A DNA stretch of 64,000 bases from Octopus sinensis. Its lineage: Eukaryota. Positions within the stretch are counted from its first letter, which is position 1. Each line of letters opens with the position of its first letter. Below the pieces are notes generated by a model. That model was not told the origin of the DNA, made no database searches, and saw only the letters and a list, made by a program, of their open reading frames with translations. A program made the position numbers and the translations under genes. The DNA lies in contig NC_042998.1 in NCBI RefSeq assembly GCF_006345805.1, positions 159,092,001 through 159,156,000 on the forward strand, written 5' to 3'. Below are positions 4,031 through 51,618 of this stretch, piece by piece.

Positions 4031-4075
<45 letters not shown>

Positions 4076-4080
4076 AAAAA
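3968..4080. repeat. (AAC)n(AAT)n(ATT)n(AAT)n plus poly-A spacer between elements
   Basis: Read directly from the sequence. Confidence 0.95.
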
Positions 4081-5025
4081 AGCGCACGAACAATTGGCTG
4101 ATAGGTGGGAGGAGTAACCTCTGCACCGCAAATATGTGACCCGCAGCAAACAAGCTGATGTTGACCAGAAGCAAACCCATCAGTGGCTGCGGAGCTCAGG
4201 GCTAAAAGCAGAGAGCGAAGGTTTCATCCTGGCTGCTCAAGACCAAAGCCTATCAACCCGGAACTACCAGGCCAATGTGATGAAAAATGGAGCAGACCCA
4301 AAATGCCGATTCTGCAACGACATGATTGAAACAGTGGACCACCTAATCTCTGGATGTAAAGTCTTAGCACCAGTGGAGTATAAATTAAGACATGACAGAG
4401 TTGGCCAATATCTCCACTGGCTAATAAGTCGGCATTACAATATCAAAACTGCCGACAAGTGGTATAATCACCACCCTGAGGCTGTAACTGAAGGAGAAAA
4501 TGTAACCATTCTGTGGGACTTTCCAGTACATACAGACCGAACCATCAAGGCCAATAAACCAGATATTGTTGTGAAAGACCAAAACAATAAAGTTTGCTTA
4601 TTGATCGACATGAGCATCCCCTGTGATCATAATATCTCAGCGAAAGAGTTTGACAAGCTCAGAAAATATAAAGACCTACTCATTGAAATTGAGAAAATGT
4701 GGCATCTCAAGGCGGTTACAATACCAGTGATCGTAGGAGCACTAGGAATGATCAAGAAGGGAACCGAAAATTATATGAGAATGATCCCTGGCTCACCATC
4801 CCTGCAAGAAGTGCAAAAGATTGTCTTAACTGGTACATCACACGTATTGAGAAGAGCATTGTCGATGTGAGAACTGTTGCTGCTCATGCATTTTAATTTA
4901 ACTTAAAAAAAAAAAAATGAACGAACTACTGAGTTTGGTTTAAACTATGAGTTTCTTTGCCCTAGGAGTCGGGAAGACACTCGGCAAGAAATGGAAGAAA
5001 ATTTGAAAGAAGAAGAAAAAAAAGT
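4081..5025 (+). mobile_element. 5'-truncated Dong-like element B (CCHC + RLE + 3'UTR), followed by (AAT)n
   Basis: ORF 4136-4870: CRFC..ETVDHLISGC, RHD, KPDIVVK..LLIDMSIP..KEFDKLRKYKDL; 3'UTR runs into taataataat at ~5025. Confidence 0.93.
4136..4870 (+). pseudogene. Uninterrupted C-terminal fragment of an R4/Dong ORF (zinc knuckle and PD-D-K endonuclease); no RT
   Basis: 244-codon open frame with intact PD..D..K motif. Confidence 0.9.
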
Positions 5026-5050
5026 AATAATAATAATAATAGTAATAATA

Positions 5051-7683
5051 GATTCTTCAAGGACAACAACATGTTAAAAAAAAAACCAAAAATGTTCACA
5101 GGAAGATAGGGAAAACACCAGTTACTGTAAAGTCTGTACTATCAAAAGAAGTGCAGGGATGTTGGAATAAAATTTGGGCAGAAGAAAAACACACAACGAA
5201 AAGGCCCCTTGGATTGATACAATATTTACAGAACTGGACTCCTTAGAAGAGCAAAAGTGGGAGGGTGTCAAGATAGAAGATATAAGATCTGCTCTCATGA
5301 GGTCAAGCAAATGGAAGTCTCCAGAATTTTACAATGATGTTTTGCAACACCCTAGTAGGATGCCTCCTTGGCTAGTTAATGGGTTAACATTCCTGCTTCC
5401 AAAAAGTGAAGAAACAAATGAACCAAAAAACTATAGACCCATAACCTGCTTAACAACTATGTATAAAACGCTAACACCTGTCCTGACGGAATATACCTGT
5501 AGTCTTTTAACAGACAGCAGCATATTCCCTAATGAACAGAAAGGATGTAAACGTGGATCCTATGGTTGTAAGGATCAGCTACTCATCAATAAGATGATCT
5601 TAGAAGATTGTCACAAACGACACAAAAACTTGTCTTTGACAGTAAAAAAGGCTTTTGATAGCCTACCACATAGCTGGATTAAGAAATGCCTGGAAATGTA
5701 TAAAATAGCACCTACTCTGCAAAACTTTTTGACTGTAAGTATGAGATCATGGAGACGCACACTAACTTTGAACAGTGACAATGAATCTCTAAATCCTAGT
5801 AATATAAAAATTTCATGTGGCATTTTCAAGGGTGACTCACTATCACCACTCCTCTTATGTTTAGCCTTAACACCTCTCTCAAAATTGCCCAATGACGCGC
5901 AGTACGGATATAAAATGTTTGATAAAAATATAAATCATCTCATTTACATGGATGATTTAAAGCTCTTTGCAAAAAATGACCAACAACTCATGGGTTTATA
6001 GCGATTGTTAAACAATTCAGTGATGACATCAGAATGCAATTTGGCCTCGATAAATGTGCAAAAGCTACTTTTATCAAAGGAAAAATAACAGAAACATCTA
6101 ACGTTAACCTTGACCAGCAGCATGTCATAAATGAGTTAGACCCAGCGGAGAGCTACAAGTACCTAGGGGTAATTGAAGGGGACGGAATAAGGCATTCAGT
6201 GACGAGGGAAAGGATCAGGAGAGAAAGTTATCGCAGAGTAAGAGCAATACTCGAGACAGAGCTGAATGCGAGAAACAGGATCGAAGCGACCAATGCTTTA
6301 GCCATACCAGTCGTGACTTACAGTTTCAATATCGTTAATTGGTCAATTACTGAATTATGTAATCTTGACAGAAAAATACGAAATCTGTTGACAATGCATA
6401 GAATGCACCACCCTAAGGCAGATATAGAACGACTTTATCTGCCAAGAAAAGAGGGAGGCCGTGGACTTTTACAACTGGCAATAACAATGAAGATTGCTAC
6501 AATTGGCCTAGAAACCTACCTAAAAAACTCTGATGACTGGATGTTAAAACTTCTCTCAAAACATGAAAACAAGAAAGCATCATATTCAGTAACAAAACAG
6601 GCAAAGGAATATCTAAGTGAATACCGAATACAACAAATTTCGGAATTAGACATACAAGAAACAAGCACAGAAGAAGCTAAGCGCATGAAAACCCGTGCTA
6701 AAACTGCTGCCTTAGATATTCTGAATAATAAATGTCAAGAAAAAACTCTCTATGGCAAATAGCCAAAGAGAGCTAATAGTGCAGATGTTGACAAAGCCCT
6801 GACCCATCAATGGCTAATGGCATCTGGCTTAAAATCTGAAACAGAAGGGTTTATCATAGCAGCTTATGATCAATGCCTACCAAGGAACTACCAGGCCAAC
6901 ATATTAAAGAACGGCAGTAGCCCAACATGTCGTGTATGTCAACCACAAAATGAAACCATTGATCATGTTGTCTCCAAGTGCAGTCTTCTAGCGCCTACAG
7001 AATATCTCAACAGGCATGATAGAGCTGCAGAATATATTCACTGGGTAATTTGCAAAAACCAGGATTTACTCCATGAAAAAAACTGGTGAGAACACAAACC
7101 ACCTCCAGTGCTTGAAAATGACCACATCTCACACCTCTGGAACTTCACCATTCAAACTAACAGAAAGATAGATGCAAATAGGCCAGATATCATATTGAAA
7201 GACTTCAGACAAAGAACATGCCTCCTCATTGATATGACTGTCCCAATCGATATAAACGTATCTGTCAAGACCTACCAAAAACTGAGCAAATATAAAGATC
7301 TGGAAATAGAAATCAGCAAAATGTGGAACCTGAAGACTAAAACAATACCTGTTGTCATAGGTGCCCTGGGAATGATAGCAAAATGGGCTGATTGCTACCT
7401 AGCTCAGATACTAGGAAACACCAAAATGGCAGAAATTCGAAAGATAGTGCTCATGGGAACTGCTCATATCCTATGCAAAATACTTTCTATGTAATCTCAA
7501 GTTTTAAAACAAACATAATTTTCGTATGTTTTTTAAATATTCACTAGTACAACACTAAATACAAAACCAAATATATGGCACATTAGGCATAACAACAACA
7601 TGAACTTCCAACCATTTGTCTCTTGAGGTCTCTGGGTGAGACTTGGAGCCAACTTGTACAAATGTAAAGCAAAAGTCAAACAT

Positions 7684-7685
<2 letters not shown>
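5051..7685 (+). mobile_element. 5'-truncated Dong-like element C (RT + CCHC + RLE, with stops and frameshifts)
   Basis: ORFs 5174-6001 (YRPITCL, GCKDQLLINK, KAFDS, IFKGDSLSPLL, YMDDLKLF), 6034-6762, 6817-7089 (CRVC..ETIDHVVSKC, RHD), 7108-7494 (RPDIILK..LIDMTVP); ends at (AAT)n. Confidence 0.95.

Positions 7686-7775
<90 letters not shown>
7686..7775 (+). repeat. (AAT)n array between elements C and D
   Basis: Read directly from the sequence. Confidence 0.97.
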
Positions 7776-7777
<2 letters not shown>

Positions 7778-8270
7778 CATTTTTGATGAAATTATAAATC
7801 ATCTCTTTTACATGGATGATTTAAAGATGTTTGCAAAAAATTACTGGCAACTACATAAAACAGTTTAGTGATGACATCAGAATGGAATTTGGCCTAGATA
7901 AATGCGCACAAGAGGGGGAAATGACAGAAACATTCAACGTTAAATTTGGCCAACCGACGGTTATAAGGGGCAGAGGAAGGTTACAAATACTTAGGGGTAT
8001 ATGAAGATGATGAAATTAAACATTCAATAATGAGGGAAAAGACCAAAAAAGAATGTTATCGTATGATACTCAAGAAAGAGCTAAACGCAAGAATCAGGAT
8101 CGAAGCAATTAATACTTTAGCCATACCGATCGTAACTTACAGTTTCAATATTAATAATTAGTCGATTACTGAAATCTGTAAGGTTGATAGAAAAATTCGA
8201 AAATTGTTGACCATGAATAGAATGCAGCTCCTTAAGATAGATGTAGAACGACATTACTAGCCAACTATAT
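7776..8270 (+). mobile_element. Internal RT/thumb fragment of a Dong-like element (D)
   Basis: INHLFYMDDLKMFAKN, MEFGLDKC and YKYLG remnants; homologous to ~5930-6440. Confidence 0.88.
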
Positions 8271-16348: not shown

Positions 16349-16742
16349 TATATATATATATATATATATATGATCACATATATTCAGCGATATCATATTG
16401 CAGAATGTATCACCTTGAAAAATGCTGACTAAGTGGCCTTCTAAGTGATGGTAAAGCCAATCCGGTGAAAAATACTGACCAATCGAAATCTAAATATCTA
16501 GATGTTTTAAATTTGTTTTTAATTCTCTTCACACCAGCTACGAACATCTCTTTAACAGCATTGTAAATTTAGTTACTGTTATTAAATATTCATGCATACA
16601 TGCATACATACATACATACATACATACATACATACATACATACATACATACATACATGCATACATGCATACATACATACATGCATACATGCATACATACA
16701 TACATACATACATACATACATACATACATACATACATACATA

Positions 16743-16846
16743 CCCTGTTGCTGATGTTGAAATTCCAATGAAGGAGACTTGAATCTAGATTTGATACCGG
16801 CTCTTTCTCTATAAGCAAAAATTCTTGAAATAAAACTGAACAATGG
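16743..16846 (+). mobile_element. ~100-bp 3'UTR remnant of the (CATA)n-embedded RLE family
   Basis: Flanked on both sides by (CATA)n; aligns with 19311-19409 and with 49165-49238, which follows an RLE ORF end. Confidence 0.8.
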
Positions 16847-17365
16847 CATACATACATACATGAGTGTGTATGTGTGTGTGTGTGTATTCAAATATAATAA
16901 AGACTGTAGGACTCTAAGATAATATAAGACGTGAGTAATGCAATGCAAGATGTACAATTGGACTGGAAAGTTTAAGGACAGAGCAAAAGGTGAAAAAAAA
17001 CGAACCCAATGCAGCACATACCGAACGGGAGAGTCCAGGAGAAGCATAACTGAACAAGTCAGCGGTCAAGCGAAAAGAAGTCGTGAAAGGAATGGTCACA
17101 TGTTCGTGGGCGGCGGGGAAAGGGAGAGAAAAAGTGGTGGTGAGCAGAAGAACAGGAAAGAGAAAAGAGAAAAAGAAAGAGACGTTTCACAAAAAATTCC
17201 TGCTAAATAGAGCTACAAAGATACGTGCGTGGTTTTACGTTAAATAAGATTCGAAATTTTTCTGTTTAATTTTTGAAACTTCTGCATCCTGTTTTCCATT
17301 TTTTTCTGTCGTTGTTTACGTATTTCATGTTGTTTGCACAGTTGGTGACGTCCTGTACCCATATA

Positions 17366-18420: not shown

Positions 18421-18756
18421 GCTACTTTGCTTTCCAAGGGGTCTTCTACTCTGTTTACTAAACCAACACACCCCAGATCGCTGGACTGAACAGTTCTTTG
18501 AACCATGAGTCAGTTGTGGATGAAACAGTGAATGATACTACGCAACAAAGACCTATCATTGGCTCCCTAAATATATACATACATACATACGTACGTACAT
18601 ACATACATGCATGCATACATACATACATACATACATACATATGTACGTGCGTACATACATACGTACGTAAATACATACGTACGTACGTACTAACATACAT
18701 ACATATACATACATACATACATACATACATACATACATACACATACATACATACAT

Positions 18757-18870
18757 GAACCGTAAAAATATGTAAAACTTTCCAGAAGTTTATCATTTAA
18801 GTATATATGAGCATGTCTAGATATGTAACTATATGCATGAGAATGCAAACATAAAACATACAGATCTGCA
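18757..18870 (+). mobile_element. Extreme 3' fragment of a (CATA)n-embedded RLE subfamily with a different 3'UTR
   Basis: accgtaaaaatatgtaaaactttccagaagtttatcatttaa = TVKICKTFQKFII*, matching the ORF ends at ~30410-30452 (TVKICKSILKFQI*) and ~49110-49145; CATA on both sides. Confidence 0.75.
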
Positions 18871-18884
18871 CATACATACATCGT

Positions 18885-19236
18885 GGTGGCACTCCGTCGG
18901 TCACGACGACGAAGGTTCCGATCAAAGGAACAGCCTGCTCGTGAATTTAACGTGCAATTGGCTGAGCACTCCACAGACACGTGTACTCTTAACGTACTTC
19001 TCGGGGAGATTCAGCGTGACACAGTGTGTGACAAGGCTGGTCCTTTGAAATACAGGGACAACAGAAACAGGAAGAAAGAGTGAGAGAAAGTTGTGCTGAA
19101 AGAGTATAGTATGATTCACCCCCTCTACCGGAGCCTCATGGAGCTTTAGAATAAATACTCGCAACGTCCGGTCTGGGAATTGAGGAATCGAAACCGCGAG
19201 TTCACTTCCCTAACCACTGGGCCATTGCGCCTCCAC
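18885..19236 (-). mobile_element. tRNA-derived SINE (family 2), near full length
   Basis: Minus strand begins gtggaggcgcaatggcccagtggttaggg (A box) followed by ggtttcgattcc (B box) and a long body. Confidence 0.8.
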
Positions 19237-19302
19237 GCATACATACATACATACATACATACATACATACATACATACATACATACATACATACATACAT
19301 AC

Positions 19303-19409
19303 AAAAATAACTTGCTGTTGATGTTGAAATTCCGATGAAGGAACCTTGGATCTAGGTTAGAAACCGGTTCTTCCTCTATTGGCAAGAAATCTTGAAATAA
19401 ACTGAATGC
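19303..19409 (+). mobile_element. ~100-bp 3'UTR remnant of the (CATA)n-embedded RLE family
   Basis: Flanked by (CATA)n and catacatgcat; homologous to 16743-16846. Confidence 0.82.
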
Positions 19410-19565
19410 CATACATGCATATATACATATATATGTATGCACACATATATATGTTAGGAATCCTTTCATTTGTATATATTTATAAATATGATATTTATAT
19501 GCATGTATGCTTCTAAACATGTGTGTACGTGCGTATATATATGCATATATATATATATATATATT

Positions 19566-27142: not shown

Positions 27143-27682
27143 TTGTGTGTATACACACACATACACACACAGTCACTCACATACACACAGTCGCACACAC
27201 AATACCCACACACACACATATACACTAAGATTTATTTAGATTAAAATACCTAATAGTATACAAATATATTTTATGACCGTTATATTAATTTATTTTTTAT
27301 TTTTACCGTTGTTTTTTATTTTAATTATTGACGCTCACGCTTGTAAACAAGTATATTTAAATTCAGTTTTTCTTGGATCTGTGAATCCGCAAATATAAAA
27401 AGATTACACTGAGAAGACTCTTACCCTCAGACAATGGACTTCTATGATTTTATTATGGGCAAGAAGCGAAACATTTGAATGTAATTTATATCTAATATTT
27501 ATTATTTATTATACTATGTTATATTATGCAAATAGATTATAAATTTTAATTCTTGAATTGGTAATTGTTATATATCTCTCCATTTTCTATTCACTTTACA
27601 TACATACATGCATGCATGCATGCATACATACATGCATACATACATACATACATACATACATACATACATACATACATACATA

Positions 27683-30521
27683 AAATCCGACCGATCTAAT
27701 GTTTAAAGCTAAGAACGATGTCGCTGGAGTGCACATGGAATCACGTGAAGTTAATTATTGGAATATAAATATTCTTATATACACAGCAGTTATTACTCTT
27801 GAAGAACAACTCGGAGAAATCTACAGTAAATAAAGTAACGAAATTACTAAACGGAAATTACTAAACCTAGATGAAAAACAAAATTTGAAGAACAAATTGC
27901 GCCGCCATATTGGATGGTTAACTACAACAATAAAATGTAAGGAGAAAAATGAGTTTACACCTCACCAACTCTACCTTAGACAAAAATTATCGAAACTTTA
28001 TCGCATGCAAATTTTTGAACGAGCCAGTATCAATCGCAAGTTTGCTTCCAACCCACAAATATCATACAGAGAGATGGGGACGGAAAACATTACTATTAAG
28101 AAAGCTCCAAGAAGATCTGCAATCATTCTCGTGAAAATTTGGAACGAAAAGAGGGATTTCAACCTGAATGCATCATAGTTAAATACAACTGAGAAAGAAT
28201 ACTCTACCAACACTAACAGTAAAACATACAAAATTGGTGCAGAAACCTTCGCTATAGCAGTAGGCAAACTGAAGAATAGAAAGGCACCTGGAAGGAACCT
28301 TATAGTTGGATATTGGTACAAGAAGCTAATATTTTATAGAAACCAGTTGATATGTATGTTTAAAAGGACTATGGAAGGTCAAACTGATATACTAAATTGG
28401 CTTGCTACAGCAAGAACAAATCTTGTTGCCAAAAATGAAATAACCGAGATGGCAGGAGAGTACAGGCCCATTGCTTGCCAAAACTTTATGCACAAACTGT
28501 ACACAAGTAGCCTCAACCAATTCCTCCAGAACCATTGTGAGTCGAATATCATTGTGACTAATGAACAGGTTGGTGGGAAGAAGGGAGTGTGGGAATGTAC
28601 CGAACAACTTTTAATAAATAAAGCTAGCGTAGAAACCTTGTGATAGTATGGCTTGATTATAAGAAGGCATTCGACTTTATCCCCCTTTCAAGGTTTTTGA
28701 GGTGCCTATGCCTCGCAAAAGTACCTACCACCCTAATTGCTGCTATAGAGGGACTCACAAAGACATGGTCAACAGTTCTCACCCTTACAACTGAGAACAG
28801 AATAATTGTTTCAGATAGTATAAGCATCTCAAAGGAAATATTTCTGTACTTCTTTTCATTTTAGCACTGAGCCTATTATCGTTCCTACTGCAGAGAATAA
28901 ATGGTTACACGCTAGGATTTTCAACTGCCAGAAATATCAATGTAACTCATAATTCCTTTGTAGACGACCTGAAGATTTATGCTAAAAGAGTTAATACCAA
29001 GAAACAACTGGAATTAATAACAACATTTTCAACTGATATAGGCATGGAATTTGGCCAAAAGAAATGTTCCAATTTGGTTATAGAACGAGGAAAGTCAGTG
29101 CCCAAAATCCAAAACCTGTGCATGAAAGATCTCTCTATCTCCCTCATTCCACACAAAGAATGTTACAAGTATCTTGGCATTGATGAAAATGTATCATATG
29201 AAGGCACTGTGAATAAAGATAGAGTGACCCCGAGAGTACTGCACAAGACTTAAGAAAATATGGCAATCGGAACTCTCCTCTTAAAAGAAAACAATATCTC
29301 ACAATGCATTTTCAGTACCAGTGCTGATCCCAATATTTGGGATACTTGATTGGTCTGTAGAGGAAATCCACTCAAATCAACTGGGGAGATTCACAGAAAC
29401 AGTGATGTTGACAGGCTCTACCTAAGAAAAAATGAAGGAGGTAGTGGCCTGAGATTAGTGCAGACGGGCTTCAGATGCTGTATGGTATCACTCGGGTAGC
29501 ACCTACTGAACAACAACAGCAAAAATAAATATATAAATGCAGTGCTGAAAAGTGAAGAGCGCAACATTGTACGAGTTGGCAGTGAGCTTGTCAAGAAGAT
29601 GATCTCCTATACTGCCCCAAAAACAACTGGGCTCTATTACCTCAGAGAAGACCTGGATGGAGAGCACTCAGCATACAAAAGAAAGACTATGCATGGTATG
29701 TTGCCTGGAAGCTTGAAGAAGATAGTAGAACTGACGCGAAGCGCAGCCTGTCTTGGACACAAGACCACTACATCACATCACACTTTGAAGGCTATACGTT
29801 TGAAATCCAGGAACAGAAGATTGCCACAAAGCACCTGGTGAACAAGAGAGACTGTGACTCTCTTGTAATCCCAAGGTGCAACTGCAAGTGTCATATTTCT
29901 GTGGAAGACATCACGCATGTGATTAGCATCTGTCCTAAAATGTCGTCGCGGTACTACCTCCCAATGCAGCATGATGTTGTCGCTAAAACAATTTACAATG
30001 CCATCCGCAAAAAGACTGACCTGAAATAAACTTAGAAAATCATTCATACATTCATAAACTCCAACTCAAGGAATACTGGTGGAATATATCTATGAAATTT
30101 TTTGTCAAATGTAAACAGGCCGTATATTGTTGTTTGGGTCAGAGGGGCACACGTATGTACCATCATAAAGTTCAGCTGCCCTGCATATATAAATATCTCC
30201 TTGAAAATCAAAGAAAAAAAAATTCTATGGACAACTGCTTCGAAATCCCCAACTTCTATATCTAAACAATGAATTCATATTCATAACCATTATAATTGGA
30301 ACACTAGGTTTTGTTAGTAAATGCTTAAGTGAGAATCTGGATAAACTGGGATTTTCAGAAACAGAAATCGACCGACTAATTCGTACATTACAAGTGCAAT
30401 CTGTGTGTGAAACAGTAAAAATATGCAAGTCTATTCTCAAGTTCCAAATCTGAATATGTTTGTAGTTGGAAACTGGTTTCCTCCTCGGTGGAAGATTTAT
30501 AACAATTAAAAAATAGAAGAG
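27683..30521 (+). mobile_element. Decayed 2.8-kb R4-like RLE retrotransposon starting directly after (CATA)n
   Basis: YRPIACQNFMHKLY, EQVGGKKG..EQLLINK, WLDYKKAFD, FVDDLK (~28960), CYKYLGID, VEDITHVISICPKMSSRYYLPMQHD, NRPYIVVW..FSCPA; preceded by an ~85-bp CATA tract and followed by acatat. Confidence 0.9.
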
Positions 30522-30529
30522 ACATATAT

Positions 30530-32130
30530 GGTGGTTGTCTACTCCTTATGCACAATAGTTGTACCTACACCTTAGATCCATCATGGCATCTTATGTGACT
30601 TTTTAGACCAGACGTTGTATTGAAAAGATATTCACATAGATTGCATGTCCGATTTGGACCACTAAGAGCTGCAGTTAAGTTCTGATCTTGTGGATCGTAA
30701 AATGTCTTTTGAGGCCTCCGTTACAATTGCAGACCTTATGGCATACACGGCATTGATAAGTGGGTACAGATATATAGGCAGAATAGTTGGTGGAAGTTCG
30801 TTTTTCATGGGTCCTTAAATGAGATTTGAGCCCAGCAGAAGACAGGCATGGTCTGTCACAGGCTGTGCACACAGAAAGGTCACTGATATTCACCTTCTAG
30901 ATCGCAACGTTCTTTTTTAAATCTCTCTTGAGTGTTGCATGTGTTATCCTGGCCTCCTCAAACGATTTCACTCCACTCGACACTTTTGTTCACCATCCAG
31001 CTTGATCCGAAGCAAGAGCTTCTATGGCCTTTGGATCCATTCCGAGTGACTTGATTGTAGTCCTTATGCCGTCCTTAAACCTCTTTTCTAGGTTTACACC
31101 GATTGCATTTCCACTCTACAAGCTCGCCATAAAACAGCTGTTTGTGTGTGTGTTCACCCACCATTCGAACAATACAGCCAGACAATCGCATTTTATTTTT
31201 CAGAATCATTGATTTCATTAAAGTGATGCCTGCAGACGCAAAGGTATCTGTGGAGTAAAAATGCCCCATTTAATGTTTGAAATGCGGCGAAGGTATTTTT
31301 AGTGGAATTGTTCTAACAATTTGAAATGACTTTCGGTTCGTAAAGAACCAATTTGATGTTATTAGTTATATGTCGTTGGCTCCAAACCACCAATTTCGTG
31401 ACTCCAAACCACCAATTTCATGACTCCAAACCACCAAATGCTTGTGCTGCCCTTTGAATACGCAAATGTGTTTCTATGTCAAGATTTCCATTATTTTGTA
31501 CAGAGATTCCAAGCTAAATGAAAGAGTCAAAAATCTCAAGTAACTTACCTTTAACAAAAATTTAAAGTGGGTTGCAAACAGCACCACGTGCAGGTTGAAG
31601 CTTTACAACTGTTTTCTTCAAGTTGATGGTCAAGCCAAAATCAAAACAAGTTGTGTCAAATGCAAATACAATAGATTGCAGGCCCGTTTCAGAGTGACTG
31701 ACTAGATCTCAATCGTCAGTATATAAGAGTTCCCTAAGAGCATTTCGATTAGCAGTATCGAATACCTTGCTTAAATCAACAAAGCAATGGTATAGAGCAA
31801 GATTCTGTTCAAAGTGCATTTCCTGTAGTTGTCTGATACTAAAGATACAACCAACTGTGAAGGAATGAAAACCACATTAAGACTCAGACATTATGGAGGC
31901 ATTTAAACGTTCTAACAGAATGCAGGCAAGTGCCTTTCCAACTACTGACAAAAGCGAAATCCCACAAGAATTTCTACACAAATACTTTGGCCCCGATTCA
32001 TACAAGGAGACTAAAATGGCATCAATCCAGTTTTGAGGCACTTGCTCGGTTCTCCAACAGTAACAAATTAATATATTGAAGAGTTCAAGCATTTTGTCAG
32101 GACCTATGCACAGATTCCATCAGACCCTGA
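30530..32130 (-). mobile_element. Decayed, internally deleted RTE-clade LINE with C-terminal C2H2-like motifs
   Basis: VPQNWIDAILVSLY...GISLLSVVGKALACILLERL (31877-32092); RLSGCIVRM..KQLFYGEL (31075-31269); CTACDRPC..GLKSHLRTH and CRVC..GLKRHFTIH (30675-30893). Confidence 0.88.
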
Positions 32131-35533: not shown

Positions 35534-35553
35534 TAATAATAATAATAATAAAT

Positions 35554-36006
35554 GACCTGATGCAGTACCTGGCAGTGGCTCTCATGACTTCTGATCTTAA
35601 CTGATTGGAAGTATTATCATGTTCATCGTTTTGTCTTGGTATAAAGGATGGCCTACAGAAACGATTCAGCTTAATACCAGATTTGCTTATCAGTTGTTTG
35701 ACCTTAACCAGTTGAACATGTCCCTTAGTGGCTGACGATGTATGCATCTCTGATACCGAGCAGGGTAGTGTGGGGAGAATCATAGCCATGTGCTGAGAGG
35801 AATTCTTTGAGGTTTGGATAATTCACCTTTGGAAACATGGGTGTTCAACATCCTTAAACAACCCTTATTCAGGGATCTTTTGAGCGGGATGGGCTACTCG
35901 ACCAGAAGAAAATTCTAACTAGACCCCACATGCAAGGTCATGCGCTAAGATCACCATGTCGCGCACAAATGGTTATGATGCTTGTGCCTGGTGTACCTTT
36001 ATCAGA
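35554..36006 (+). mobile_element. Non-coding AAT-associated module (copy 2), 3'-truncated and fused to element G
   Basis: Colinear with 38684-39122; homology stops at tttatcaga|tcggc. Confidence 0.88.
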
Positions 36007-38683
<2,677 letters not shown>

Positions 38684-48447: not shown

Positions 48448-48510
48448 CACACGCACACACAGACTTATATGCATACATACCTACATATATACATACATAC
48501 ATGCATGCAT

Positions 48511-49238
48511 TCAACCTTCGAATATTGTATAGTATCCTGATAAACAGCAACAGCAATCCCAGAGTGAGAGATTGCAAAATACTTAACAAGTAAAAGAGAC
48601 AGTGAAACCGTTGGAACCCCGAGATGCAACTGAAGCTGTCGATTATCTCATATTTCTGTGGAGTACATGACAAATGATATCAGCAGCTGCCCAAAAATAT
48701 CATCTAGTTACTACCTCCCATTGCAGTGTGATATAGTTGCTAAAACCATGAAGAATTCTATTCGAAAGAAAGGACTGATTTGAAGTTGACTACATACATA
48801 TCAAGACATGGAGTATTGGTAGAACATTACCATCAACACGTCTATGAAGTGCAAACATCGTTTTGGAACAGTTAAGAAAAAGTGTGCCGCCATAGTAGTT
48901 AGATGCCTGCTGATGTAAATATCTCTTCTCAAAAGAGAAAAGGGATATCTACGGACAACTGCTTCGAAACATTTAGCTTCTATACCCACATTATCAATTC
49001 ACATTTTTAGCCGTAAATGCTTAAGTGGCAATCTGGAGAAGGTAAGAAGTTTAAAAAAGGAAACGGACCTGCTAGCATGCGCATTACAAATACAATCCAT
49101 AAACGGAGCAGTGAAAATATGCATGGCATTTCTGAAGTTTAAATTGTGACATTGTATTTGTTATCGACATTCTAACGACGAAGCTTTGTATCTTTGTTAG
49201 AAACCAGCTCTTTCCTTACAGGAAGACTTCAAAGAGAA
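48511..49238 (+). mobile_element. 5'-truncated copy of the (CATA)n-embedded RLE family
   Basis: Homologous to 29860-30521 (ISSCPK.SS.YYLP..DIVAKT; ADVNIS; VKICMAFLKFKL*); CATA-type repeats on both sides. Confidence 0.85.
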
Positions 49239-51618
49239 CATACATATGCATATACATATATACATACGTACATATGTATATATATATGTGTGTGTGTGTG
49301 TGTGTATGCGTATATTAATGTAAATATAATTGAAATAAGAATAAATACATTGTGGTAGAGTCATAAAAGTCATTTAAAACACAAATGCTGTTATTTTCAG
49401 TTTTGTTTATTTTATATTTACCATTCATAAAGTGTACCACAAATTTTGTCGAACATCTTTGAACTGGTCATCGACATAGAACATCAATCGAATGAAGATA
49501 TTTGATATATTTTGTCAGTGACCAGCTATTTTCTGAATAATTCATTTTATACATATATCCAATTACAACTACTCCTGGAGAGATTTGTGTACGCTAACCT
49601 GTATGTATCTATGTGTGCACGCGCGCCTGTGTGTCTGTGTTTCTGGCAAATTATCCTAAAGTCTCAGCTAAACTTACTGAATATTATTCAACTTGTATTT
49701 ATGTATTATGCATTTTCTGTCTTACCTTTTATTTTCTGCGAGTGGAGTGTGCCTAATTTTCTTTAATGATTCAACCGGTGGAGTTATCCTGCAGTAGTTA
49801 GATAGGTTCCGTTATGTTCTAAGTTCAAATTAGGCTCAAGTCGACTTTATCTTTCTTCACAAACCGGATCGTAAAACAAGCACTGGAGTCGATGAAATCA
49901 AAAACATCTCTGACCCCAAATCTGTGGCAATGAAACAGTGTTTCTCGGAGATGAGAGCTGAGATGGTGAGGAGAAAGAAGGGGAAAGTTTTCATGACCTT
50001 GATCTTTGCACGCTGTTCAAAATTACTTTTGAATTTCTCTTTCATATTTATATTCATGTTTATTTTCAGAATATTAGTAATGATTAGTCGTCTATATCTA
50101 CAAAAGCGAGTGTACGTGGTTATGTATGCGTTTAGGCTCGAAAGGCTCTGAAACGATGTGTTCTCGAGAAAAACTAATTTGATTTTCGAAATTTGCATCC
50201 CAAAGAGGTCATCCGTAAATAATAAAAATACATAATTTTCTGCGAGAAATAACTTTTAGACCGACAGCTCTCCCACTCTCTTTATATTGCCATCAATCTC
50301 TCTTTTTCTATCTAAGTTATCACACTTTTTATCTCTCTTTCCTTCTCTCTCTCTCTCTCTTTCTGTCTGTATATATGTATTATCTCTCACGCATTGCTTT
50401 CATTTTGTTTAAAGCTTCGTCTTCTAATGTTTACTTTCATTTTATCACAGCTATTACGCACAAATCCTGTTTTCTGATTGGATTAAAATGATCAAACTCC
50501 AAACCCCTGTAACATTCTCCTAAAATGTTTCTTCAATAAATGAATCACTAACTCGGATGGATTCAGCGTGAAAAAGTACATCAATATGCCAAATTTGAAA
50601 ATTTTCACTTGATTTTAAAATTTCAAAATCTATGACAGTGACAGAAAGCATCTCTCAATCTATCTCACTTTTCGCTTTTTTCATAGTAAACTCCCCCTCT
50701 CTATATACATTTATCCCACTCTCTCACTCACTCTATATAAAAATATATAACTCACCATGAGAGTGTGTATGCAAATGTGTAATGAATTTCATTATGGAGG
50801 CAGTGTGATTTAAAAAAAAAAATGGTATGTAAAAGGTGATTTATACTAATAGCGTAATTTTGAATTAGTAAATGTGCTTTTTTTACGCACGCACACAGGC
50901 ACACACACATACACACACACACACACACATACACACACACGGATTCCCTTGATGCAGGATGGGGGATTAAAAACTTTAATTGCAAATTTGTTGTTGTTGT
51001 TGTTACTTAAATCCTAGCAGTAGACAGCCGCATCATCAATCATGTGTTGATGAGGAAAATATATTTAAAAACATCAATACACGCGGCAAAGAAACGAGAA
51101 AGGTATCAGGCGGTTGTAGGTTGTGCTGGAAACATCAGCTAAATCTTCCTTAAATCACACACCTTTTCGTTTGAAAATTATTTTGATATCATGAACAGTA
51201 ACAAATTAAAGATTCGGACAGTCCGTATTTTAAAACTATGACGAAAATAATTTCGCAAACAAAGCTGAAATTTTAGAATTAATGGAGGCGGTGTGTTTAA
51301 TGAAATTTTTTTTTTTTAATTTCAGTATTGTTTTTAAATTACTTTCCATTGAACTGTATAGTGCAAGAAAAAAATGGACAAAATCCGTCCTGAAGTGAGG
51401 AGGATGAATTTATAAATTTTCAAAATTGCTTTCATAAAAAAGCTTCCCCCATCATTTGCAAGTGTGTGTTGAAAAATGTTTGAAAAAATCCCGTGAAAAA
51501 GGAGAAAATCTAATTTATGTGGATGTGCTATCCAGAAAGTTTGGCAAATTACCTTGCAACGATGAGTTACCTAGTGTATATACGCATACATACATACATA
51601 CATACATACATACATACA

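Follow-up and report, generated by a model that had tools for sequence, protein, structure and literature searches.

The stretch of DNA analysed here (hereafter the window) comprises 64,000 nucleotides from Octopus sinensis (NCBI RefSeq assembly GCF_006345805.1, contig NC_042998.1, positions 159,092,001 to 159,156,000 of the forward strand). The window is eukaryotic, has a G+C content of 28-40% and is dense in microsatellites as judged with the program TRF. It contains five pieces of a retrotransposon lineage of the non-LTR type (LTR, long terminal repeat) which encodes a reverse transcriptase (RT), a CCHC zinc knuckle and a restriction-like endonuclease (RLE). The pieces are located at positions 27683-30521, 48511-49238, 16744-16846, 18757-18869 and 19304-19409, all on the plus strand, and all of them are decayed, 5'-truncated copies from at least two families of this lineage. 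An earlier note, made from the letters of this DNA, had described the five pieces as one family. All five exist and belong to one lineage, but they represent two or three families at least.

The largest piece, element A (27683-30521), starts directly behind a (TACA)21 tract (27597-27682; TRF and sequence), the upstream rest of its target, and is followed by ACATATAT (30522-30529), a short downstream remnant of the target repeat. Its open reading frame (ORF) is decayed and spread across three frames with several frameshifts and stop codons. Aligned to an intact relative of 1151 amino acids, it corresponds to residues 162-1151 with 40% identity; since the alignment begins at residue 162, the element is 5'-truncated by roughly 0.7 kb. 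The RT domain, which contains two frameshifts and lies approximately at 28437-29205, was identified by Pfam (RVT_1, E 2.7e-12). It is followed by the remnant of a CCHC zinc knuckle (RCNCKCHISVEDITHVISIC; CNCKCHISVEDITHVISIC at 29877-29933), a motif that is invariant in the relatives, and by a decayed RLE core at 30114-30222 (NRPYIVVW...IIKFSCPA). Comparison with the relatives revealed that the PD of this core is changed to PY and the glutamate of IIEFSCP to lysine, and thus the nuclease is dead. The reading frame ends with the C-terminus TVKICKSILKFQI and a stop codon at 30451-30453, and the 3' untranslated region (UTR) extends from 30454 to 30521.

Element B (48511-49238), a 5'-truncated and decayed copy of a second family that retains the RLE region with the 3' UTR, is located between a (CATA)n tract (48472-48510) and a degenerate ACAT-type tract (49239-49288), both identified by TRF and in the sequence. 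The proteins of A and B are 36% identical in the RLE region, and the DNA of the two elements is about 70% identical, which indicates the presence of at least two families. In a DNA self-comparison of the window, B was the sole relative of A that was recovered; the three short pieces required reading in frame or a profile. Two of these, 16744-16846 and 19304-19409, consist only of 3' UTR; they show mutual homology as well as homology to the corresponding part of B, so that they are assigned to a B-like family. The former is bordered by a (CATA)38 tract (16591-16743) and the remnant CATACATACATACATG (16847-16862), the latter by a (CATA)16 tract (19238-19303) and the remnant CATACATGCATATATACATAT (19410-19430); the tracts were defined by TRF and sequence, the remnants by sequence. 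The third short piece, 18757-18869, lies behind an (ATAC)47 tract (18571-18756; TRF and sequence) and contains the last 13 codons of the reading frame (TVKICKTFQKFII and a stop codon) together with a short 3' UTR. Due to an unconvincing DNA alignment this fragment had been regarded as unrelated, but the conserved in-frame C-terminus T-V-K-I-C-K-T-F-Q-K-F-I-I-stop and the short UTR overturned this assignment. It is followed by the remnant ACATACATACAT (18870-18881) and directly next to it by a short interspersed element (SINE). The 64-kb window was searched with tblastn, with an nhmmer profile built from the 3' UTR and with a covariance model, none of which revealed further copies of the lineage.

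All five pieces directly abut a sense-strand (ACAT)n tract at the 5' end, and the orientation is constant (5/5). Compared with (ACAT)3, the 12 bases in front of the five 5' ends show 12, 10, 12, 12 and 12 matches of 12. A match of at least 11 of 12 occurs in just 0.8% of all position-by-orientation choices within the window, and from this background the chance of the flank pattern of the five pieces is about 1e-8. ACAT-type sequence is also present 3' of every piece, where it is short or degenerate (8-50 bases, often just 8-16). The 5' ends correspond to five different positions of the element, as expected from incomplete reverse transcription. No contact of any of the five pieces with (AAT)n was found; the (AAT)n tracts of the window carry a different clade. 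Taken together, the observations of the earlier note on upstream tracts, orientation, CATA-type 3' ends, variable truncation points and avoidance of (AAT)n were all reproduced.

To find relatives, the stitched ORF of element A was searched against a collection of 5.8 billion proteins, which yielded 225 matches at E<=1e-10. The best of these are 40-46% identical and, if complete, 1130-1160 residues long. Intact ACAT-flanked relatives in this range of identity were found in at least seven other assemblies. Among the external loci that were fetched, 11 are flanked by (ACAT)n and 9 by (ACTT)n. ACAT is present at both sides in L001, L007, L008, L022, L024 and L019/L020 and at the single visible side in L003, L014, L023 and L027; ACTT is present at both sides in L002, L006 and L021 and at one side in L004, L005, L009, L010 and L026. 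Full-length copies carry the repeat at both sides, and a recurrent 3' junction consists of an A followed across the junction by ACATACAT. At every external locus the ORF runs in the direction that reads ACAT or ACTT, never the complement. Truncated copies were also recovered outside the window. Locus L025 is a 5'-truncated copy behind the compound tract (ACAT)n(ACTT)14(ACAT)7 with a short ACAT remnant at its 3' side, and a second, truncated copy in L002 (L002:7010-7823) also has an ACTT target. The finding that truncated copies adjoin the repeat (the window pieces, L025, L020 and L002:7010-7823) demonstrates that the upstream tract is the target and not part of the element.

Several features of these loci were observed in addition. 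The contig of L019/L020 (ERZ25072740 ctg115731) is 18 kb long, is marked as circular and contains tandem identical 5'-truncated elements separated by (CATA)7 spacers; a minisatellite of 15-16 bp (gtctatattgtctga) is repeated about 30 times in the 3' UTR of these elements. A covariance model detected the 3' ends of extra copies at L024:167-211 and L002:7738-7782, directly before the tract of the next element, which indicates that insertions pile up head-to-tail at one repeat. Some of the assemblies with ACAT/ACTT elements have megabase contigs and 172-389 near-identical copies. All ACAT/ACTT clade proteins originate from unannotated metagenome-type or raw-read assemblies and none carries a family name; among named proteins, those of Bursaphelenchus xylophilus come nearest. 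No relatives were revealed by a scan of viral contigs, and none beyond one contaminant contig by a scan of prokaryote genomes. A distant relative with 26% identity, L018, is inserted within 28S ribosomal DNA (rDNA) with a 13-bp target duplication (GTGACGCGCATGA). Its contig (CASBQJ010000122.1) is eukaryotic 28S rDNA that is filed under the metagenome-assembled genome (MAG) of an uncultured cyanobacterium, probably due to contamination of the MAG.

The lineage is characterized by a single ORF with RT, CCHC knuckle and a C-terminal RLE of the PD-(D/E)xK type, present as remnants in A and B and intact in the relatives. In full-length relatives Pfam recognised only RVT_1 and zf-RVT, to which the C-terminal RLE is added; an N-terminal domain of the apurinic/apyrimidinic endonuclease type (APE-type), as in Waldo and the R1 clade, is absent. 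The columns C-x2-C...H-x4-C, RHD, PD and E/K are invariant across 14 relatives. In the earlier note the motif FSCPA had been set against IDMSIP of the AAT families. This distinction holds within the window, where the (AAT)n-flanked elements show IDMSIP or IDVSIP, but the related elements vary at this site (FSCPA, FSCPN, VSCPL and FSCPL), and for this reason FSCPA alone does not separate the targets. At the N-terminus about 70 residues (RNRDYS..W.YEL..DLY.CY...GYM.RLK.LWD..HPE) are conserved in both ACAT and ACTT elements. The N-termini of 22 clade members are homologous to those of 12 Dong-like proteins (hhalign 97.6%, E 3.5e-12, 66 columns), and the N-terminus of R4 and Dong has been described as a Myb/SANT-like domain without zinc fingers (PMC7998251). 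Neither a cysteine-rich motif in the N-terminal region of the clade nor a Pfam match in this domain was detected, and no residue of it obviously distinguishes ACAT from ACTT elements. The copies in the window lack the N-terminal domain because they are truncated.

A bootstrapped, distance-based neighbour-joining tree was calculated for the region from RT to RLE. Element A and every other ACAT or ACTT element in this tree fall into a single clade, which has 100% bootstrap. Proteins from Anolis and others make up a separate, well-supported clade together with the (AAT)n-flanked elements of the window; this clade is the sister of the ACAT/ACTT clade, with the 28S-inserted relative as outgroup. 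The deep branches of the ACAT/ACTT clade are ACAT-flanked and the ACTT elements are nested within it, with moderate support at internal nodes. This topology suggests that ACAT is probably the older target and that ACTT arose at least once; the presence of ACTT sublineages inside the clade indicates that target specificity has switched within it. The proposal of the earlier note that a separate RLE lineage with tetranucleotide specificity exists is therefore upheld by the ACAT-flanked relatives from at least seven assemblies and by the separation from the AAT elements. The stated target CATA applies to the ACAT elements and has to be refined by the (ACTT)n sublineages of the same clade. Overall, the data support a clade of microsatellite-specific RLE retrotransposons with a tetranucleotide target that occurs in multiple species.

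A short block located 30-70 nucleotides before the 3' end is conserved between species. RNAalifold folds this block into an interrupted hairpin of 9 bp with a UUGUU loop and compensatory changes at all pairs (9/9). Pairing was possible in 93.7% of the cells of the alignment, compared with 66% after shuffling of columns (0 of 500 shuffles reached the same value) and 25-47% with slid partner columns. The covariation score was 0.82 versus 0.26. The sequences for this analysis were picked by eye for the presence of the block, which introduces a selection bias, but compensatory changes played no part in the choice. Two copies that had not been used for training were recovered by a covariance model of the block (R1), both just upstream of the expected tract type. 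In the window the hairpin is present in three of the five pieces according to this model, in element B at 49174-49218 (43.5 bits), in fragment 16744-16846 at 16767-16811 and in fragment 19304-19409 at 19334-19378. Element A contains a diverged hairpin (GGAAAC-TG-GTTTCC) at the same place of the 3' UTR, which is below detection by the model. Folding of single 3' UTRs from the window was uninformative, and the hairpin emerged only in the cross-species alignment.

From these results we conclude that the five pieces are, with high probability, dead 5'-truncated insertions of an RLE non-LTR lineage with R4/Dong-like architecture that is specific for (ACAT)n. The data show which domains are present, that the orientation is fixed and the 5' ends vary, that the repeat flanks full-length copies and lies directly upstream of truncated ones, and that the stem-loop is conserved and the clade separate. 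The mechanism we propose follows R2 and the general scheme of target-primed reverse transcription (TPRT). The protein would probably bind its own RNA via the conserved 3'-UTR stem-loop, which by analogy may serve as the entry site of the RT. The N-terminal domain may read the repeat. The protein would recognise the ACAT/ATGT duplex in one polarity and nick the ATGT strand within the tract. The freed 3' OH would then prime reverse transcription of the element RNA, and incomplete reverse transcription would generate the variable 5' ends, to which the part of this repeat lying upstream would be joined.

One could argue instead that the ACAT repeat is the element's own microsatellite 3' tail, later expanded or carried along, and that insertion is not aimed at ACAT. 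Many long interspersed elements (LINEs) end in simple repeats, ACAT-type sequence follows every copy, and the tandem arrays of element, (CATA)7 and element in L019/L020 would fit this explanation as well. However, the repeat is also found directly upstream of the five differently truncated window copies and of the copies in L025, L020 and L002, and a repeat at this position of internally truncated copies cannot be a 3' tail. In addition, the longer and purer tracts in the window are the upstream ones, and unoccupied ACAT tracts are common there (six further sense-strand tracts carry no element). We therefore consider an origin of the repeat as a tail highly improbable. The least probable explanation in our judgement is that simple-sequence or AT-rich DNA is generally preferred, or that copies survive there passively, with the ACAT motif not being recognised. 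The window is unusually rich in microsatellites, and passive accumulation has been put forward to explain why Waldo-A and Waldo-B occur close to CA repeats in Drosophila (PMC3812793). Against this, (AAT)n, (AT)n and (AC)n are each present in the window to at least the extent of (ACAT)n, yet none of the five pieces contacts them (0/5), and it is another clade that occupies the (AAT)n tracts. Passive accumulation would also leave unexplained the constant orientation in the five window copies and at all external ACAT and ACTT loci, and the recurrence of the same motif across unrelated assemblies.

Several points weigh against the specific insertion of this lineage into (ACAT)n as outlined above. 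The flank evidence consists of the window and the fetched loci, and the external loci were chosen by protein similarity and not by random sampling, with few copies per family. At L023 the repeat (ACAT) is found at the 3' side and is missing where the 5' end is expected. The tracts upstream of the window copies are long, but those downstream are very short or degenerate. Both the strand that is nicked and the function of the N-terminal domain are extrapolations from R2. Furthermore, the 5' ends of R4 and Dong are processed by a ribozyme similar to that of hepatitis delta virus (HDV), which in Dong has been assayed (PMC3774820), whereas in the ACAT lineage none was detectable by sequence: eight loci gave no Rfam match to such a ribozyme at E<=1, although ribozymes of this type are hard to find by sequence, and a hand-written descriptor of the nested pseudoknot had no match in 11 5' ends. 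The Rfam matches that were obtained at the loci were spurious microRNA matches to the repeat itself and, around L018 only, 28S rRNA. A GC-rich motif (GGACGTGTGGATTA, GACGGACGTGAATT, GGCGGATGTGTTTT and similar) was noticed in the first 50 nucleotides of L003, L005, L006, L007, L008 and L021. In full-length elements of both the ACAT and the ACTT type it is found again and again immediately within the 5' junction, and it did not fit an HDV-like fold when tested with the descriptor.

The Dong elements of the R4 clade (Bombyx mori and relatives) are among the closest known systems. Both groups have a single ORF with RT, CCHC knuckle and C-terminal RLE, a homologous Myb/SANT-like N-terminal region without zinc fingers (PMC7998251), and insert into microsatellites in fixed orientation with the repeat at both sides. 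In contrast, Dong targets (TAA)n (PMC3812793, PMC7998251) and the elements described here target (ACAT)n or, in sublineages, (ACTT)n. As its second catalytic acidic residue the ACAT lineage has E (IIEFSCP), where Dong-like elements have D (LIDMSIP). The Dong-like (AAT)n elements of the window share just 24-36% protein identity with the ACAT lineage and fall into a separate clade (100% bootstrap). Oriented insertion into one repeated target sequence is typical of the R4/Dong clade and was found here; none of the pieces or clade relatives is in contact with (AAT)n, so that the lineage is placed outside Dong in the strict sense. R4, which is specific for 28S rDNA in nematodes, has the same architecture, and a 28S-inserted relative exists (L018). 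The nearest named proteins are from B. xylophilus, a nematode with R4 families in Repbase (PMC7650587). R4 differs from the lineage described here in that its target is a gene instead of a microsatellite, and the two share little protein similarity. The designation "R4-like" in the earlier note is thus justified by the architecture, the shared N-terminal domain and the 28S-inserted relative. The distance tree, which covers the window elements, the fetched relatives and the proteins from Anolis and others, is compatible with a position of the clade inside R4/Dong, beside it or in HERO, and the clade may thus belong to HERO.

A variety of targets has been reported for other elements, (TAA)n for Dong, 28S rDNA for R4, (TG)n for Togen and unspecified microsatellites for some HERO families, in addition to ACAY for the APE-type Waldo, AC for Mino, TC for Kibi and TTC for Koshi (PMC3812793, PMC4640811, PMC7998251). 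HERO and Togen resemble the ACAT lineage in being RLE-type elements that in part target microsatellites (PMC4640811), but the targets named in the open text differ, a comparison made by description only. Waldo elements of the R1 clade (WaldoAg1/2 and WaldoFs1) are reported to be sequence-specific for ACAY microsatellites, ACAT included (PMC3812793). They possess an N-terminal APE-type endonuclease, whereas the ACAT lineage has a C-terminal RLE and no APE domain, which indicates that the same target was reached by convergence. The closest solved structures are those of R2 (R2Bm and R2Tg), with similarity in the RT only (E 1e-28). R2 is the source of the model borrowed here (RLE nick, TPRT and recognition of the 3'-UTR RNA) and differs by its N-terminal zinc fingers and Myb domain and by its rDNA target.

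The statement of the earlier note that no CATA-specific family is known agrees, for RLE elements, with the full-text searches of the open literature, but has to be limited with respect to the APE-type Waldo elements. It is conceivable, although rather unlikely, that the specificity is real but that Repbase or Dfam already lists the lineage, for instance under R4/Dong or HERO. Kojima and Jurka, who cite a Repbase Report on leech elements (PMC4640811), describe microsatellite specificity for some HERO families, and Repbase includes numerous R4 families (list in PMC7650587) without any discussion of their targets in the open literature. On the other hand, searches of the open full-text literature, to which our comparison was confined, revealed no RLE element with ACAT, CATA or ACTT as target, a survey from 2021 gives (TAA)n as the target of Dong in most insects, molluscs and cnidarians (PMC7998251), and no protein of the ACAT/ACTT clade carries a family name in the 5.8-billion-protein collection. 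With Repbase and Dfam lying outside the comparison, it is probable but unproven that the lineage is undescribed. The more far-reaching interpretation, namely an undescribed and widespread R4/Dong-like clade devoted to tetranucleotide microsatellites, with (ACAT)n as the ancestral target, at least one switch to (ACTT)n and a covarying stem-loop that marks the RNA for TPRT, we regard as evenly balanced between being correct and not.

Site-specific RLE retrotransposons are models for TPRT and are under development as tools for gene insertion. To our knowledge, the way in which such elements read their DNA target is known for R2 only. If the interpretation is correct, nature would provide in this clade a series of proteins that are closely related but differ in their very short DNA specificities. 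The targets of the ACAT and ACTT relatives differ by one base in a 4-bp unit, so that these elements form a small experiment of nature on the encoding of specificity and its change, and the conserved 3'-UTR hairpin offers a defined RNA handle. The lineage is also a second, independent route to an ACAT-type target besides the APE-type Waldo elements, a case of convergence. For genome annotation, it explains in part why LINE fragments and tetranucleotide repeats are linked in invertebrate genomes that are rich in microsatellites.

In addition to the five pieces, the window contains other mobile elements. A tblastn search with the stitched ORF of element A identified two (AAT)n-flanked elements with 24-36% identity, which are Dong-like RLE elements located at 4066-7686 and 35552-38517. 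The latter is nearly intact and consists of the ORFs 35982-37136 and 37133-38419 with one frameshift between them. The former looks composite, and an additional RLE fragment was found at 4136-4870. The RLE of both elements reads LIDMSIP or LIDVSIP, and their C-terminus is quite unlike that of the ACAT lineage. Two more short RT-like fragments (1729-1992 and 7855-8176) show 28-58% identity over short stretches and are assigned to neither of the two clades.

The microsatellites of the window are unequally distributed between the strands. Perfect-core (ACAT)n amounts to 648 bp on the plus strand and 116 bp on the minus strand, and (AAT)n is likewise strongly one-sided (714 bp versus 27 bp by strand). 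Oriented insertion and the 3' tails of both retrotransposon clades might contribute to this asymmetry. The SINE next to fragment 18757-18869 is 355 bp long (18882-19236, minus strand), has a tRNA-like head with recognisable box A and box B, gave no call with ARAGORN and is present as a single copy in the window. It fills precisely the interval from the ACAT tail of fragment 18757-18869 to the (CATA)n tract that comes next, so that the SINE, too, is inserted in a repeat of the ACAT type, but with opposite orientation.

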